From: Heterodontus francisci | Lineage: Eukaryota | Length of the DNA: 64,000 nt | Reading direction: 5' to 3' | Assembly: GCF_036365525.1 (NCBI RefSeq) | Contig: NC_090395.1 | Coordinates: forward strand, 65,869,326-65,933,325 | Shown here: positions 41,032-56,004 of the stretch, piece by piece | Layout of the letters: every line of letters begins with the position of its first letter | Numbering within the stretch: the first letter of the stretch is position 1 | Notes under the pieces: generated by a model | The model's input: only the letters and a program-made list of their open reading frames with translations | The model's database searches: none | Told to the model about the DNA's origin: nothing | Position numbers and translations under genes: made by a program

Positions 41032-41885
41032 CATAAGAAATAGGAGCAGGAGTAACCAAATGGCCTCTTGTGCTTGCACCGCCATTCAGTAAGATCATGG
41101 TAATCTTCTACCTCAATTCCGAATTCCCACCTACTAAATGGAGAAAGACTGCAGAATTCCGAGGTGCAGAGGGATCTAAGTGTTCTAGTGCATGAGTCAC
41201 AAAAAGTTAGTATGCAGGTACAGCAAGTTAGAAAGAAGGCTAATGCAATGCTATCCTTTATTACCAGAGGAATTGAAAATAAAAGTAAGGTTGTTATGCT
41301 TCAGTTATACAGGGCATTGGTGAGACCACATCTCGACTACAGTGTGCCGTTTTGGTCTCCTTATTTAAGGAAGGATGTAAATGCATTGGAGGCAGTTCAG
41401 AGGACGTTTACTAGATTCTTACCTGGAATGAGCGGGATGTCTTATGAGGAAAGGTTGGACAGACTGGGCTTGTTTTCACTGGAGTTTAGAAGAGTGAGGG
41501 GAGACTGGATTGAAGTTTATAAGATCCTGAATGGTCTTGACAAGGTGGATGTGGAAAGGATGTTTCCTCTTGTGGGTGAGTCCAGGACTAGGGGGCACTG
41601 TTTTAAAATTAGGGGTCACTCTTTTAGGACAGAGATGAGGAGAGATTTTTTCTCTCAGAGGATTATGCGACTTTGGAACTCTCTGCCTCAGAAGGTGGTG
41701 GAGGCAGGGTCGTTGAATATTTTTAAGGCGGAGGTAGATAGATTCTTGTTAGGCAAGGGAATCAAAGATTATCTGGGGTAGATGTGAGTGTGGAATTCGA
41801 GACAGCCATGATCTTACTGAATGGTGGTGCAGGTTTGAGGGGCCGAATGGCCTACTTCTGCTCCTAATTCGTATGCTCCTATGTT
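41032..41885 (+). mobile_element. CR1 LINE 3' portion preceded by an inverted CR1 3' end
   Basis: ORF 41164-41781 (205 aa CR1 C-terminus); 41032-41133 is a reverse-oriented CR1 3' UTR. Confidence 0.88.
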
Positions 41886-43289: not shown

Positions 43290-43880
43290 TGCTGCGCCCA
43301 GGTGTGGCCGCAGGTGAACTACAACTCCCGCGGTGCCTTGCGCGATGACGGTTTCCGGTTGGCGGGAGGGGGAGGGAAGGTTTCCGGTTTTCGAGCCTAA
43401 CCGTCGCGGATCGCGCTGGCCGCTCGCTCGAGCAGTTGGGTTTGAATTCCTAACGGTCACCGGGTCAAACTTTTCTTTTATTTTCCTCTCCTTCTTAAAG
43501 CGCTTGGGAGGTTTAATGACTTGACCGAACAGAACAAAGGAAAAAAAAAACTTGTTGCACCGTCTGTGAGGGAGGGTCTGGTGTCCTCGGGCTCCGCACC
43601 GGGAGAATTTCTGATTTCCCCCCCCTATCCTGCTCCGGTCCGGCCTCTCTCCGCTCTCTCCGGACCCTGAGCTTCGGCTCTCCCGGCTGCCAGGATGGGC
43701 TGCACCATGAGCGCCGAGGACAAGGCGGCGATGGCGAGGAGCAAAATGATCGACCGCAACCTGAAGGAAGACGGCGAGAAGTCGTCCCGGGAGGTCAAAC
43801 TTCTGCTACTCGGTAAAACAAAACACATTTTTGAGGCTGGAGCTTTGGTTTTCACCGCCGAGGGTGCATCCGAGATTGCA
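43290..43880 (+). promoter_or_regulatory. CpG-island promoter of the GNAI gene
   Basis: CpG-dense, no TATA seen. ACTACAACTCCC (ZNF143/THAP11-type motif) at 43318-43329; TTCCGG ETS cores at 43353-43358 and 43382-43387; half-CRE TGACG at 43346-43350. Confidence 0.8.
43695..43812 (+). CDS. GNAI3: G protein alpha-i subunit, coding exon 1 (probably GNAI3)
   Basis: [39 protein letters not shown]+G; 118 nt then a GTAAAA donor, the conserved length of GNAI coding exon 1. Gly2/Cys3 lipidation motif is intact. Gi family is near-certain; the paralogue (i3 versus i1/i2) is an inference. Confidence 0.85.
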
Positions 43881-50100: not shown

Positions 50101-50929
50101 TCTAAAGCAAGATCTTTTGCATTGCTTGGAAGCAGAAGAAAACAACTTGTGTATTCATAGGATAAATGTAATTCCATTAACTAAATTAATGAAATAAGAG
50201 CTTGTTCTGTTCATTATCTTGGGCAGGTTACCAAAAACCTACCCAGATATCAAGGCTAATTAAGATAAATTTTGAAGGCACTGAGTTGGGTCTCATCTAT
50301 GCAAATGATCCAAGATATAAGAACTTAAAAATCTGGTAGAAAAACAAAAATATAAACACTTTTCTAAAATGTTCGTAAAGAGTGACATTACATTTTGCTT
50401 TTGGGCAATTTTAGTTTGCATTTTGAAAAGTGCAACGTAACAGTTTGTTAATGTAGGTGACAGAATATTGTTGAGCTGCGAAAATGGGTTACTGATAGTC
50501 CTGTTATTTTGCACATGCATTGATTCCTGGACAGTGCGCAGTGATATGAATCCTGTGCCTGTGGTGTAATAGCAAGAAAAAAAAAATAACTTGCAATCAA
50601 AATAAATGCACACACTGGTAAGAACATTCTGCAAATTAACTAGTGTTTAAAGCTGAAAATTTGGTCTTCAGACAACACAAAAGAATAAAGCCACTTATGT
50701 TACGTCATACCCTGCTTTATTGCATATTGGAGTATTAATCACACTGCCATATACAAACACTGATGCAAATCTCTACCCTATACTTGGGTTTACATCTAGA
50801 CAAAGTATGTCACATCACATGTTACAGTAGGGAGATGACTTATTATTCACAGAAATTTTGAGGTACACTAGAGGATTTTATATTGCTTATGTCTGGTAGT
50901 ATATGCAAGTTCTTCAGTTAGTTCATAAT

Positions 50930-53900
50930 CTTCTTTAGCCTCCTTGTCTCGAGAGACAATGGGTAAGCGCCTGGAGGTGGTCAGTGGTTTGTGGAGCGGC
51001 GCCTGGAGTGGCTATAAAGACCAATTCTAGAGTGACAGACCCTTTCACAGGTGCTGCAGATAAAATTGGCTGTTGGCTCTCCCCTTGCGCTTCTGTCTTT
51101 TTTCCTGCCAACTGCTAAGTGTCTCCAACTCGCCACACTTTAGCCCCGCCTTTATGGCTGTCCGCCAGCTCTGGCGATCACTGGCAACTGACTCCCACGA
51201 CTTGTGATCGATGTCACAGGACTTCATGTCGCGTTCGCAGACGTCTTTAAAGCGGAAACATGGACAGCCGGTGGGTCTGATACCAGTGACGAGCTTGCTG
51301 TACAATGTTTCCTTGGGGATCCTGCCATCTTCCATGCGGCTCACATGGCCAAGCCATCTCAAGCGCCGCTGGCTCAGTAGTGTGTATATGCTGGGGATGT
51401 TGGCCGCCTCGAGGACTTCTGTGTTGGAGATACGGTCCTGCCACCTGATGCCAAGGATTCTTCGGAGGCAGCGAAGATGGAATGAATTGAGACGTCACTC
51501 TTGGCTGACATACCTTGTCCAGGCCTCGCTGCCGTAGAGCAAGGTACTGAGGACACAGGTTTTATACACTCGGACTTTTGTGTTCCGTGTCAGTGCGCCA
51601 TTTTCCCACACTCTCTTGGCCAGTCTGGACATAGCAGTGGAAGCCTTTCCCATGCGCTTGTTGATTTCTGCATCGAGAAACAGGTTACTGGTGATACTTG
51701 AACCTAGGTAGGTGAACTGTTGAGCCACTTCCAGAGCGTGGTCACCGATATTGATGGATGGAGCATTTCTGACGTCCTGTCCCATGTTCGTTTTCTTGAG
51801 GCTGATGGTTAGGCCAAATTCGTTGCAGGCAGCTGCAATCCTGTCGATGAGTCTCTGCAGACACTGTTCAGCGTGAGATGTTAATGCAGCATCGGTAGCA
51901 GAGAAGTTCCCTGATGAGGACTTTCCATACTTTGGTCTTCGCTCTAAGATGGGCAAGGTTGAACAACCTGCCATCTGATCTTGTGTGGAGGAAAATTCCT
52001 TCTTAAGACTTGAACGCATGTGAGAGCAGCAGGGAGAAGAAGATCCCAAACAGTGTAGGTGCGAGAGCACAGCCCTGTTTCACGCCACTCAGGATAGGAA
52101 AGGGGTCTGATGAGGCGACGCTATGCTGAATTGTGCCTTTCATATTGTCATGGAATGAGGTGATACTTAGTAGCTTTGGTTGACATCCGATCTTTGCTAG
52201 TAGTCTGAAGAGACCACACCACGTCTGCTGACGAGGTCAAAGGCTTTGGTGAGATCAATGAAAGCAACGTAGAGGGGCATCTGTTGTTCTCGGCATTTCT
52301 CCTGTAGCTGGCGAAGGGAGAACAGCATGTCAATGGTGGATCTCTCTGCTCGAAAGCCACACTGTGCCTCAGGGTAGACACGCTCAGCCAGCTTCTGGAA
52401 CCTGTTTAAAGCGACTCGAGCGAAGACTTTCCCCACTATGCTGAGCAGGGAGATTCCATGGTAATTGTTGCAGTCACCGCGGTCACCCTTGTTCTTATAG
52501 AGGGTGATGATATTGGCGTCGCGCATGTCCTGTGGTACTGCTCCCTCATCCCAGCACAGGCAAAGCAGTTCGTAGAGTGCTGAAAGTATAGCAGGCTGGG
52601 CAGTCTTGATTATTTCAGGGGTAATGCCGTCCTTCCCAGGGGCTTTTCCACTGGCTAGAGAATCAGTGGCATTACTGAGTTCCGATTTTGTTGGCTGTTC
52701 GTCCAACTCATCCATGACTGGCAGAGACTGGACTGCATTGAGGCGGTCTCAGTGACACCATTTTTCCTGGAGTACAGTTCTAGGTAGTGCTCCACCCAGC
52801 GGTCCATTTGCTTGTGTTGGTCAGTGATTGTGTCCGTCAGTGATTGTGTCCCCTGATTTAGACTTGAGGGGGGCAATCTTCCTGATGGTTGGCCCAAAAG
52901 CGCGCTCAATGCCATCATACATTCCTCCTGATGTTTCTGGTGTCGGAGGCCAGCTGAATATGACTGCACAGGTGTTGCCAGTAGTCATTTGCGCAGCGCC
53001 TGGCTGTTCTTTGTGCAGCACTTCTGGCTGCTTTAAGTGCTATGGATGTTAACTCGCTGGGGGCTTTCTTGTAGTTCAACAGTGCAATGCGCTTAGCGGC
53101 TATGACTGGTTCCAGCTCTTCAAAGTGAGATTGAAACCAATCTGCGTTCTGCTTCACATGTTTGCCATAGGTGGTCATTGCTGAGTCATAGATGGCGCCT
53201 CTGACGTGGGCCCACTTAGTCTCTGCATCCCCTGTAGGAGTGTTTTGAAGGGCTTTTTCAAGTGAATTTAGAAACTTATGTAACAGCTGTGGATAAGAAA
53301 TTCTGCTAGTGTTGATGCACGGGCAGCCTTTCTGCTTGGAGTGATGCAGCTTCTTTGGTTTTAGTCTAACCTTGCTGCACACCAGGGAGTGGTCGGTGTC
53401 AGTCCGCACTGTGGAAGCTGCATGTGATTTGAAAGAGGCTCGCCTTGTGACGATGAGGTCCAGGTGGTGCCAACGATGTGATCTTGGATGCCTCCAAGAA
53501 ACCTGGTGACAGGGTTTAGTATGAAAGAACGAGTTGGTGATGCAGAGGTTGTGATAGGTACACAACTCCAGCAGTCTCTGTCCATTCTCATTCATCCATC
53601 CAATGCCATAGCGCCCAAGGCAGGAGCGCCATGAGTCATGGTCGGCCCCAACCCTGGCATTAAAGTCCCCCAGCAGGAACAGATGTTTGGTATTGGGGAT
53701 GCTACTAATGATATGATGGAGTTTTTCGTAGAACTGGTCTTTAACTTCAGGTGGGGAGCAGAATGTTGGAGCATAGATGCTGAGTAGCTGTTTTGGACCA
53801 GAGGCGGTGAGCAGTCGGATGGACAGTATGCATTCTGAGCCATTTGAAGGTGGCTCCATCATGCTGAGCAAGGAGTTTCTGATGGTGAAGCCCACTCCGT

Positions 53901-54777
53901 GCTGTCGTGGTTCTTCAGGATCCCTACCCTGCCAGAAGGTGGTGTAGTCTTGCTCTCTTAGATATCCGCTCGCTGGAAGGCGTGTCTCCTGAAGTGCTGT
54001 AATGTCCACATTGAGTCTAATGAGCTTGTTGTTAATGATGGCGATCTTCCGAGCATTGTTGATTTGTGTAAGGTCTTCCGACACGCCAGGGCACACAGTT
54101 CTGACGTTCCAACTTGCAAACGAAGGGCTGGTACCTTTTTTTTTTTTGTCGTGCTGTTTGTTGCGGTGTTACAGTCCACTTGTCGGGTAGTGACCCTGAG
54201 CTCCAAGCACCCATTGATGCAGGTGGACTGTGGTGGGACAGAACCTTGCAGCCTCCGGTCAGTCCGGTTTGAGTCGGGCGGTAGCTGTCCAATGAGATGC
54301 GATGACCTCTCCCACCAACAAAGGCAACCCGTAGCGCCCAATCTCTATGCCAGTTGAGCTGGGCTTATAACCCGTAACTGCTGCCTTCCGTTTTGCTTTG
54401 GTCGCGGTGAGGTAACTATGGAGTGACCTCTCCATGGCGCATGCCTGGGTGGATGTACGGAGGTTGTGAATTGCCCAAGCGTCAAAACCCCCCCCTCTCG
54501 ATCTTCCTGGTGGGGTCCAAAGGAGTGCAGAGCAGTACGTTTGGCACCGGTATGGCTGCAGGAACTGCCAGAAACATGCCAAAGGTGACACAGGACCCCC
54601 TTCGGGGTTCTGCTCCGGATTTTCTGTTAGGGTTTGCTCCCTTAGCCTTGGTCTCTCCCAAGATGCCCACAAGGCAGTGGGGTTGTTAGGGCCCCTGCTC
54701 AGGGAGAGGTAGGGGGAGGGGGCGCGAGGGGAAGATGGTGCGAGAGGGGAGCTGGGAAGGGGTATATAGGGTGTTAC
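50930..54777 (-). mobile_element. RTE-clade LINE, near full length, frameshifted
   Basis: APE endonuclease (ALQETR, SIYAP, LLGDFNARVG; ORF 52915-54096), RT motifs (KAPGKDG, QCGFR, AFIDLTKAFD, YLGS, LLYGSEAW) and an (AAG)-type 3' tail. TTCATAAT is duplicated at 50922-50929 and 55200-55207. Confidence 0.93.
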
Positions 54778-55193
54778 AATGGCGTCCCCTACATATAGAG
54801 CTTCGGTCTTGTCAGCTGCCAGATGTTTGAAGATCTTTGAGATCAGGATTGGCATCTTGTTTTCCCTGCCTCCCTTGATGCTGATCCCCAGGCCCCCGAC
54901 TTCGTGCTTGATTACCTTGACGCTTTGTTTCTTGTTGCTGATGGTCTCGGGGATTTGTTCCGGGAGCTCGGTGTAGGCATTGCGGATCCCGATGGCTTTC
55001 GGACTGCGGGACCGGGCTGAGGACTTTGCGTGCCGGCTCCGTTGGTGAGACCATTTCAGGCGGCGGGGTCCCCTGGCTGCTCGCAGCTCAGAATGAGATT
55101 CTCCTGGTTCAGAGTGGCCAGCACACAGAGCCAGCTGTCCCTGACTAAAACTTCCAGCAGCCCACTTCTCTCCAGCCTGCTGACTAACGCCAT
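54778..55193 (-). pseudogene. SNTB1: Beta-1 syntrophin 5' fragment (ATG, PH1a, most of PDZ), fused to the 5' end of an RTE LINE
   Basis: [21 protein letters not shown]...AA* (TGA at 55058-55056), then a frameshift, then [81 protein letters not shown], LPEQxPExISN and ALYVGDAI fit SNTB1 better than SNTA1/SNTB2. Confidence 0.9.
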
Positions 55194-56004
55194 CTTTTTT
55201 TCATAATAGTGGTTATAAAAGCTTTAATAATGCTGTATCTATGCAAACCATTATCAAAATGCAAAGAAAATCTCAATTTCCAGGCCTTTTTTCTGTTAAC
55301 AGTTCGGTTCATTGTTGCATCTATACTGATGTCATGTCTTGCTTGAGAAAAGAAGACTTGAATGCTATCACTCCCGTTTCTGTCACGTGAATTCAAAATG
55401 ATATCCCTATTTTGGTAACAACACTACACTCAATCTCTTAATTTGTAAGATTTTATGATAGTTGTAATTTCTACAGTTCTACCAAAGATAAAAGATTAAA
55501 GTCCGTTGCTAAATTTTTAGATCTGATTTGCTTAAATGGGTATTTTTTGGATTATGGAAAGGTTGGAAGTGGTGTACCTCAGCTAGGTCCACTTTGTGTG
55601 TGTGTGTACACAGAAGCAGACCTATCTATCGCATTTTTTAGGCCACTTTTAGCTTGCATATAAAAAAAAAGCCAGGAGTTACAAAATGTCCATGTAAGTA
55701 ATGTTATGTTATTGAGCTATGAAACTGAGTTACTTATTATTCTGCTATTGATCACCTAAGAACATAAGAAATAGAAGCGGTAGACTGACTATATTGCCTC
55801 TTGAGCCTTCTCTGCCATCCAATACAATTATGGCTGATCTGCCTCAACTCCACTTACTCGCCAGGTCCCCAAATCCCTTGATTCCCAAGAGACCAAAAAT
55901 CTGTCCATCTCAAAGGTCAGGTGGCATCTGTGGAGTGAGAAACAGAGTTAACATATCTGCCAGCTCTGAGCAGAGCTCCTCCTTACTCCTTGACAGTGAC
56001 AGGA

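Follow-up and report, generated by a model that had tools for sequence, protein, structure and literature searches.

Buzdin and co-workers reportedly described chimeric retrogenes made by template switching of a reverse transcriptase, among them U6/L1 chimeras, in which the LINE part is said to be 5'-truncated and the acceptor RNA to be copied from its natural 3' end. In human LINE-1/mRNA 5' chimeric insertions, a search of the donor gene often fails to find the source element (Law & Burns, bioRxiv 10.1101/2025.02.02.635956). The subfamilies SVA_F1 and, in chimpanzee, pt_SVA_D6 are non-autonomous SVAs mobilised by L1; their host sequence was acquired by splicing from an exon-1 donor, they number 84-94 copies, and promoter activity of the captured exon was shown (PMC6139936). 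Plant RTE LINEs, studied in tobacco, switch their 5' UTR; their variants form successful families, with new 5' ends for which no donor is known (Hartig, Seibt & Heitkam, bioRxiv 10.1101/2022.11.04.512097). Fusion with host mRNA and template switching by the reverse transcriptase have both been proposed as sources of these plant 5' ends (bioRxiv 10.1101/2022.11.04.512097).

Here, we analysed 64,000 nt of genomic DNA from the shark Heterodontus francisci (the window), which carries a related structure on its minus strand. As in the human LINE-1/mRNA chimeras, a sense, first-exon piece of a host mRNA precedes a near full-length LINE, and one target-site duplication surrounds both. Unlike those chimeras, the LINE appears to belong to the RTE clade and has no poly(A) tail, the duplication measures 8 bp, the host is a shark and the junction lies inside exon 1.

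Structure of the insertion

A single insertion spans 50922-55207 on the minus strand, where an 8-bp repeat, 6 nt, a 415-nt copy of beta-1-syntrophin (SNTB1), the RTE and the repeat once more follow one another. All features claimed in a preliminary description of this DNA were found where it had placed them. The features are as follows, with their basis in parentheses.

43695-43814, plus: first exon of a GNAI-like gene for a G-protein alpha subunit (six-frame translation scanned for motifs)
55200-55207, minus: target-site duplication (8 bp), 5' copy, reading ATTATGAA on this strand (sequence inspection, repeat statistics, bridging contig)
55194-55199, minus: AAAAAG between duplication and ATG, the last SNTB1 5' UTR bases or filler (sequence inspection)
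54779-55193, minus: sense copy of the SNTB1 mRNA 5' end, 415 nt (Pfam, PDB, shark protein comparison, RNA contig)
55056-55058, minus: nonsense change TGG>TGA; shark SNTB1 has Trp and the other contigs TGG (frames, contig variants)
55008-55014, minus: 1-nt deletion (frameshift) between ...QSPQPG and SRSPK..., near 55011 (frames against shark SNTB1)
54772-54778, minus: junction TGTAACA, the 7 nt that separate SNTB1 homology from the C-rich tract (sequence; homology ends at 54779)
54214-54771, minus: RTE 5' UTR, apparently non-coding, whose first ~70 nt are a C-rich tract (family contig depth)
50981-54213, minus: remnant of the RTE reading frame, probable ATG at 54213, stop at 50983-50981 (domain search, frame path)
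50930-50980, minus: RTE 3' UTR, 51 nt, ending ...AAAGAAG, no poly(A) tail (sequence, family contigs)
50922-50929, minus: 3' copy of the 8-bp target-site duplication (sequence inspection, repeat statistics, contig comparison)

The GNAI-like exon 1 lies on the plus strand, and the motif scan of the six-frame translation found no exon 2 downstream within the window; the insertion therefore lies antisense in intron 1, and the GNAI intron context proposed earlier holds. Other-species DNA contigs covered the flank only at 55533-55700, with the insertion site outside this segment; no empty site appeared among them, and the window contains no second copy of the insertion.

The direct repeat reads ATTATGAA on the minus strand and TTCATAAT on the plus strand (55207-55200 and 50929-50922). 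It had been described as bracketing both parts, and one target-site duplication does enclose the SNTB1 piece and the RTE together. The same 8-mer recurs at comparable spacing (within ±10 nt) at 6e-4 of window positions. The G+C fraction rises from 0.34 outside to 0.50-0.57 inside, with the steps located at both repeat copies. At the 5' boundary, a 712-nt same-species DNA contig (depth ~11) bridges the flank, the repeat copy and the SNTB1 piece as far as 55142, and separate contigs in two runs bridge the flank-to-SNTB1 junction. At the other boundary, the RTE family's 3' end (50930) directly adjoins the repeat copy. The rare repeat, the composition steps, the position of the RTE 3' end and the 5'-retained, 3'-truncated shape of the SNTB1 piece support the single chimeric insertion suggested previously; the SNTB1 5' end and the RTE very probably arrived in one event.

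The SNTB1 piece, the RTE and their junction

The SNTB1 piece starts at its ATG (55193-55191) and runs through the PH1a segment and a linker into the first ~60% of the PDZ domain, corresponding to shark SNTB1 residues 1-141. The preliminary description had listed the ATG, PH1a and PDZ segments correctly, and its "most of the PDZ domain" was too much: the fragment covers profile positions 2-50 of 81, about 60% (Pfam E=1.3e-6). Over the N-terminal 45 aa, identity to Stegostoma SNTB1 (residues 1-45) is 80%, and over the 74-aa PDZ piece (54996-54775), identity to Carcharodon SNTB1 (residues 68-141) is 84%. The top named protein matches were all SNTB1, with sharks leading at 81-85%, and the best PDB match was beta-1-syntrophin (2e-22), followed by alpha-1 (1e-21) and beta-2 (1e-17). 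Furthermore, the piece is collinear with SNTB1 from the initiator Met (residues 1-45 and 68-141), and its best match is SNTB1 rather than SNTA1, SNTB2 or SNTG.

Letters 1-415 of a 2454-nt RNA contig align to 55192-54779 at 95% identity (20 mismatches, 1 gap), beyond which the contig is unlike the window; this contig is probably the parental SNTB1 mRNA. Its sole gap coincides with the 1-nt deletion in the piece. Two SNTB1-like RNA contigs both start at 55192, and the piece starts at most 7 nt 5' of the ATG, where these contigs begin; it lies in sense orientation, joined to the RTE 5' end. It retains the 5' but not the 3' end of the mRNA, the reverse of an ordinary 5'-truncated retrocopy. Such a shape is expected of a 5' extension of a LINE cDNA. 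Neither the piece nor the chimera has a coding function at present, and annotators should treat the SNTB1-like PDZ sequence within the GNAI intron as a dead retro-fragment, neither exon nor gene.

The RTE frame contains an AP-endonuclease (~54125-53389), a reverse transcriptase (RT; ~52715-51700), DUF6451 (51620-51534) and then a C-terminal Cys/His motif; Pfam placed Exo_endo_phos (2.6e-9) and RVT_1 (4.2e-11) in this order on the minus strand. An AP-type endonuclease and a reverse transcriptase in one long frame and a very short 3' UTR without poly(A) are RTE-clade traits. The clusters nearest to the endonuclease frame (score 0.96) bear the name "craniofacial development protein 2-like", which we take to be a BovB/RTE-derived gene. 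Assignment to the RTE clade appears justified by the domain order, the 3' end, these nearest clusters and DUF6451 at the RT C-terminus. At the 3' end, 385 family contigs diverge into unrelated A/T-rich sequence precisely at 50929/50930, and some family copies bear extra AGAAG-like units there. The contig consensus shows A/T-rich flanks of family insertions, and the site here is TTCATAAT. The earlier reading of a near-complete RTE applies to its extent, to which we add that the copy is dead: its frame carries at least 8 disruptions (frameshifts or stops), and it is short of ~13 nt that the family has at 51072.

The C-rich RTE 5' UTR measures 565 nt in total, and Pfam and protein-relative searches found no protein relatives of its open frame. 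Summed contig depth was 1.4e5-4.1e5 over 54117-54824, ~200 over the SNTB1 piece and ~11 in the flank; family-level depth persists across the leader, up to the 54648-54824 bin, beyond which it drops ~1000-fold. Same-species contigs thus place the leader within the RTE family. The element appears full-length at its 5' end to within about 20-50 nt only, because the family's exact canonical 5' end is not visible. For the TGTAACA at the junction, the candidates are untemplated filler, microhomology and the RTE 5' terminus.

In five other vertebrates (sturgeon, birds, snake and gecko), SNTB1 exon 1 extends to ...KEVLLE, 29-30 codons beyond the break, and read-through proteins of these species place the end of exon 1 at ~codon 170. 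The break, at codon 141, is therefore in mid exon 1, ~90 nt short of this inferred donor, in an exon of 56% G+C. Judged from these gene structures, ordinary splicing at the exon-1 donor is unlikely to have made the junction. The trans-splicing model of Law & Burns does not fit either, since the junction falls within exon 1 rather than at a splice donor.

Routes to the joined sequence

The two leading routes are those of the preliminary description, namely a template switch and a source RTE in SNTB1 exon 1. We tentatively favour the template switch as the means of joining the two RNAs. A single event of target-primed reverse transcription would have put a composite cDNA antisense into intron 1 of the GNAI-like gene. 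Two steps of it we treat as established: the RTE endonuclease nicked an A/T-rich site (TTCATAAT^), and full-length RTE RNA was reverse-transcribed, starting at the 3' end (50930) and reaching the C-rich 5' end (~54778). The reverse transcriptase may then have jumped onto the 3' end of a 5'-terminal SNTB1 mRNA fragment, whose break lay at codon 141 of exon 1, and have copied this fragment as far as its 5' end or to a few bases short of it; the 7-nt TGTAACA may be filler left by this jump. Second-strand synthesis would have produced the 8-bp duplication around both parts. The copy has decayed since then: it departs from the probable parental transcript by ~5%, its SNTB1 piece carries a stop and a frameshift, and its RTE frame is disrupted at least 8 times.

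A template switch is consistent with extra nucleotides of unclear source at the junction, and the A/T-rich family flanks, set against a breakpoint in an exon of 56% G+C, disfavour a source RTE at that place. LINE reverse transcriptase template jumps and host-mRNA 5' fusions are also on record (bioRxiv 10.1101/2022.11.04.512097; 10.1101/2025.02.02.635956). However, the acceptor SNTB1 RNA must end inside exon 1, whereas classical jumps land on natural 3' ends.

Copy number bears on the choice. The SNTB1 piece was found on 5-6 distinct same-species DNA contigs per position, equivalent to ~7-12 copies, with a summed depth over positions of the piece of 83-148 versus ~11-12 for single-copy flank. 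At 6 of the 7 variable places with the best support, the window copy stands alone against the other contigs, which all agree. A count of one or several hits had been proposed as a means of telling a one-off switch from a mobilised subfamily; a partial answer is that the piece is multi-copy in the species, but in no other copy was the junction observed. Should the multi-copy pieces share the junction, they would require one productive source, which a one-off jump does not provide unless the captured exon acts as a promoter.

A 5' transduction is a serious possibility beside the template switch. A full-length RTE would once have sat in sense orientation inside SNTB1 exon 1, in a lost allele or a duplicate, and been transcribed from the SNTB1 promoter; each offspring would therefore start at the SNTB1 transcription start and carry the same 415 nt before the RTE. 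The sense orientation of the piece and its attachment to the RTE 5' end agree with this, as does its start at most 7 nt from that of the two SNTB1-like RNA contigs. The multi-copy state and the star-like variant pattern (6 of 7 places) are expected of siblings from one source, and human L1 has the same class of insertion, with a source element that is often no longer found (bioRxiv 10.1101/2025.02.02.635956). Against it, an RTE within a coding exon of SNTB1 would be a null allele, the family favours A/T-rich targets whereas the break lies in a G+C-rich exon, and other SNTB1-like copies joined to RTEs are presupposed.

The multi-copy state of the piece leans towards a small mobilised lineage; searches for protein evidence of a chimeric subfamily found none. 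That the window copy is itself a member of a small RTE sub-lineage (~10 copies), repeatedly retrotransposing with an SNTB1 first-exon 5' cap, is nonetheless rather doubtful. If so, the captured G+C-rich exon would be a portable promoter or start site, the lineage would be an autonomous-LINE counterpart, from a cartilaginous fish, to the SVA_F1/MAST2 and pt_SVA_D6/STK40 subfamilies of primates, and it would offer a directly traceable case of RTE elements renewing their 5' ends.

Splice-mediated capture, as for SVA_F1/MAST2 and several human L1-mRNA chimeras, is improbable. A shark-specific or cryptic donor at the end of the piece (ATT|GTAACA) would have been joined to, or have lain just upstream of, an RTE in the next intron, and the spliced or read-through RNA then retrotransposed. 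The 6 nt past the break, GTAACA, do start like a donor (GTAA), a donor is the exact end point in 6 of 17 human L1-mRNA chimeras (bioRxiv 10.1101/2025.02.02.635956), and SVA_F1 and pt_SVA_D6 originated in this way (PMC6139936). However, exon 1 goes 29-30 codons further in the five other vertebrates, the exon side ATT and the +5 C make a poor donor fit, the RTE side begins at and not within the family 5' region with no acceptor AG before it, and a strong pyrimidine tract with AG near 54700 was left unused.

Two independent events with a chance repeat, the SNTB1 fragment being present earlier or through DNA duplication and the RTE landing beside it later, are very improbable. Some copies of the multi-copy piece may exist without an RTE, but the chance of the repeat is 6e-4, the RTE by itself has no repeat beyond 3 nt around it in the window sequence, and no SNTB1 sequence follows its 3' end in the window. 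In addition, both flanks are intron at 34% G+C in which no promoter-like or additional exon sequence was found, and the shape of the piece is not that of a normal retrocopy. An assembly artefact, with the SNTB1 piece wrongly joined to an RTE of an enormously repeated family, is the least credible reading even though none of the contigs listed spans the 54779 junction or the entire insertion, since separate contigs in two runs bridge the flank-to-SNTB1 junction, a misjoin would not yield a matching duplication at the far end, and private mutations are evenly distributed over both parts.

Comparison with described chimeras

The locus gives a clean and completely delimited case from outside mammals and outside the L1 clade, and indicates that RTE reverse transcription is able to place a host mRNA 5' end ahead of a full-length element. 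The donor gene is identifiable, so the route of 5'-end acquisition is traceable through the parental SNTB1 locus and sibling copies.

Like the Buzdin-type U6/L1 chimeras, the insertion is bipartite with one duplication and co-oriented parts, the second RNA being copied to its 5' end; unlike them, the LINE is full-length and the acceptor begins in mid exon. The likeness to SVA_F1 (MAST2 exon 1) and chimpanzee pt_SVA_D6 (STK40 exon 1) is that a G+C-rich host first exon caps a non-LTR retrotransposon and that the captured piece is multi-copy in the genome. In contrast to both, the element is an autonomous-type RTE, the break is intra-exonic, and there are ~10 copies of the SNTB1 piece at most, any linkage of the others to RTEs being putative.

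RTEs probably rely on 5' ends that are borrowed or renewed, as seen in the 5' switching of plant RTEs, where the LINE body and 3' end are conserved and non-homologous 5' sequence is swapped. The shark element appears to share the clade with these plant elements, but here the donor is known (SNTB1), the old 5' UTR was retained rather than replaced, and the copy is dead. This type of chimera is well known for mammalian L1 and SVA; on the present comparison, we regard the shark RTE case as a new example and not a new mechanism.

Layout and boundaries of the chimeric insertion

The insertion at 50922-55207 was read on the minus strand, on which a piece of SNTB1 (beta-1-syntrophin; 54779-55193, 415 nt) stands in front of an RTE LINE.

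Features of the insertion 55207-50922, read 5' to 3' from the sequence
5' end, minus strand: 8-bp repeat ATTATGAA, then AAAAAG
3' of AAAAAG, minus strand: syntrophin frame starting at the ATG
3' of the syntrophin frame, minus strand: C-rich tract, then endonuclease/reverse-transcriptase frame
3' end, minus strand: short tail with AAAGAAG end, then second ATTATGAA

Self-comparison of the window showed that both 8-mers at the insertion ends (55200-55207 and 50922-50929) match exactly, and an 8-mer recurs at this spacing by chance at 6e-4 of window positions within +-10 nt and at 2.7e-3 within +-20 nt. The G+C content is 0.34-0.35 in either flank compared with 0.51-0.58 within the insertion, each step falling at a copy of the repeat. 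Both parts share a single flanking duplication, at which the composition changes and which the RTE 3' end abuts, so that one retrotransposition event very probably made the whole insertion; the SNTB1 piece, furthermore, has a 5' end and no 3' end, as expected of a 5' extension of LINE cDNA. Both the single insertion and the bracketing 8-bp direct repeat claimed in the preliminary description thus stand. No second copy of any insertion part was detected when the insertion was searched against the window by self-BLAST.

The insertion is antisense to a GNAI-like G-protein alpha subunit gene, exon 1 of which lies at 43695-43814 (+) and is followed by an intron. No GNAI-like exon-2 motif was found downstream of 43814 within the window, so that 43815-64000 is probably intron 1 throughout. 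About 2 kb upstream of exon 1, an open frame at ~41500-41700 (+) reads ...YKILNGLDKVDVERMFPLVGESRTRGHCFKIRGHSFRTEMRRDFFSQRIMRLWNSLPQK and looks like the C-terminus of a further non-LTR retrotransposon frame, CR1/L2-like.

Identity and copy number of the SNTB1 piece

Two frames in the 5' piece match shark SNTB1: frame A (55193-55059, 45 aa) is 80% identical to residues 1-45 of the Stegostoma protein, and frame B (54996-54775, 74 aa) is 84% identical to residues 68-141 of the Carcharodon protein. Between them the piece is disrupted by a TGA at a shark Trp codon and by a 1-nt deletion near 55011. Positions 2-50 of the 81 in the PDZ profile were matched (Pfam), beta-1-syntrophin was the best solved-structure match, and the top database matches were SNTB1 throughout, with sharks ranked first. 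On this sequence evidence SNTB1 is the donor, and the copy is collinear with it from the initiator to codon 141, which bears out the earlier reading of an SNTB1 5' end that includes the ATG. In truncated SNTB1 gene models from sturgeon, two birds, cobra and gecko, the protein runs to ...KEVLLE and then reads through into the intron; the chimera junction would therefore fall within exon 1, and the exon-1 donor is predicted from these models to lie 29-30 codons (about 90 nt) past the break.

Contigs of the same species came from DNA (X1 and X2) and probably RNA (X7), all from one sample that is possibly the assembly's own and hence not independent support. Letters 1-415 of a 2454-nt RNA contig align to 55192-54779 (20 mismatches and one gap, 95%), and the following 2 kb is unlike the window, the homology ending exactly at the chimera junction. 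Since contigs crossing the RTE are only 140-230 nt long, this contig represents unique sequence; it would most simply be the parental SNTB1 mRNA. Several places in the SNTB1 piece are each covered by 5-6 distinct DNA contigs, whose summed depth of 83-148 equals 7-12 single-copy equivalents, contig depth being only a rough guide to copy number. At 6 of the 7 best-supported places, every other DNA contig differs from the window. The piece itself is thus multi-copy in the H. francisci genome as read from contigs, and the changes in the window are mostly private. Protein searches for sibling chimeras returned one weak, unrelated match with the junction-spanning open frame (54262-54855) and no candidates with the 45-aa N-terminal frame, length limits weakening both blanks. 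A common TGA stop was considered as proof that the master copy had been mutated and set aside as too weak, window-type depth at 55056 being 62 versus 33 between two runs of the one sample, with letters near contig ends possibly uncounted.

The RTE element and its family

The RTE part contains Exo_endo_phos, RVT_1 and DUF6451 in that order (Pfam), and its endonuclease frame is closest to clusters carrying the name craniofacial development protein 2-like, a gene derived from BovB/RTE. The coding path, whose probable ATG is at 54213, ends with a stop at 50983-50981 and requires at least 8 frame changes or stops; the 3'UTR is 51 nt long, without a poly(A) tail. In the same species, summed contig depth of the family is 1e5-2.6e6 versus about 11 for the flank, and it declines from 3' to 5' as is usual. 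Family-level depth (1.4e5-4.1e5) continues over 54117-54824, across the C-rich leader between the SNTB1 piece and the RTE reading frame, and then drops ~1000-fold, which makes the leader the 5'UTR of the family and the element full-length as far as the depth bins resolve. At 50929/50930, 385 contigs depart from the window into unrelated A/T-rich sequence, and the 50930 side is the true 3' end of the family, touching the repeat.

Two other readings of the leader were rejected. An A13 run (54150-54136) taken as the poly(A) of a 5' mRNA part would make the 640-nt leader a third cargo, but leader depth is at family level. The leader might also have been an ORF1 sharing a frame with the PDZ piece, but Pfam and homologue searches drew blanks, and its open frame fits its C-rich composition.

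The family is extremely abundant in H. francisci and also occurs in RNA contigs. Five nt at 52213 are missing in about a third of its depth, which suggests two subfamilies, and ~13 nt of family sequence at 51072 are missing from the window copy. DNA and RNA contigs of the species also join 50985-50996 to 54416-54421, skipping about 3.43 kb; this brings the terminal ~55-65 nt of the RTE up against the initial ~360 nt of its 5'UTR, in what looks like a derivative with an internal deletion that is probably non-autonomous. The first ~70 nt of the 5'UTR are a pyrimidine/C-rich tract (54700-54771, minus strand) ending ...CTCCCTGAG; this strong polypyrimidine tract plus AG could be a candidate splice acceptor in sense intronic elements. 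Within the family the tract varies, ~50 nt being swapped for another C-rich string in other contigs. DNA contigs from another species (X10) contain the family and stop short of the insertion site, where an empty site would be an orthologous GNAI intron 1 with a single TTCATAAT and neither part.

Origin of the chimera and comparison with known systems

As to how the SNTB1 and RTE RNAs were joined, we infer, as a tentative first choice, that the reverse transcriptase would have switched template at the 5' end of the RTE RNA onto a fragment of SNTB1 RNA. The family prefers A/T-rich targets whereas the break point is G+C-rich, and 7 nt at the junction (TGTAACA) are assigned to neither part, both of which favour a switch. 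A source RTE residing in SNTB1 exon 1 and transcribed from the SNTB1 promoter is only slightly less likely; it would fit the multi-copy signal of the SNTB1 piece and its beginning where RNA contigs begin, but would have required insertion at that G+C-rich point. Splicing at the known exon-1 donor is unlikely, the break being intra-exonic. With one duplication around both parts, chance juxtaposition is a minor alternative, and so is misassembly: one 712-nt contig of single-copy depth from the same species runs from the 5' flank through the repeat into the SNTB1 piece, of which it covers 58 nt, although no contig among those listed spans the junction into the RTE.

The observation holds, its first interpretation was correct and its limits are well defined, yet it is ordinary in kind. 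It is the same kind of event as the LINE-mRNA chimeras of human L1, of which 17 insertions are catalogued; these carry first exons in sense orientation, a near full-length L1 and one duplication, with a splice-donor endpoint in 6 of the 17 (bioRxiv 10.1101/2025.02.02.635956). No such chimera in a shark or in an animal RTE was described in the literature searched, a statement about that literature only. Plant RTEs cycle 5'UTRs, with host-mRNA fusion as one proposed source (bioRxiv 10.1101/2022.11.04.512097), and SVA_F1/MAST2 and pt_SVA_D6/STK40 are amplified subfamilies capped by exon 1 (PMC6139936). The shark finding would gain interest if its sibling copies were chimeric and mobilised via the captured exon.
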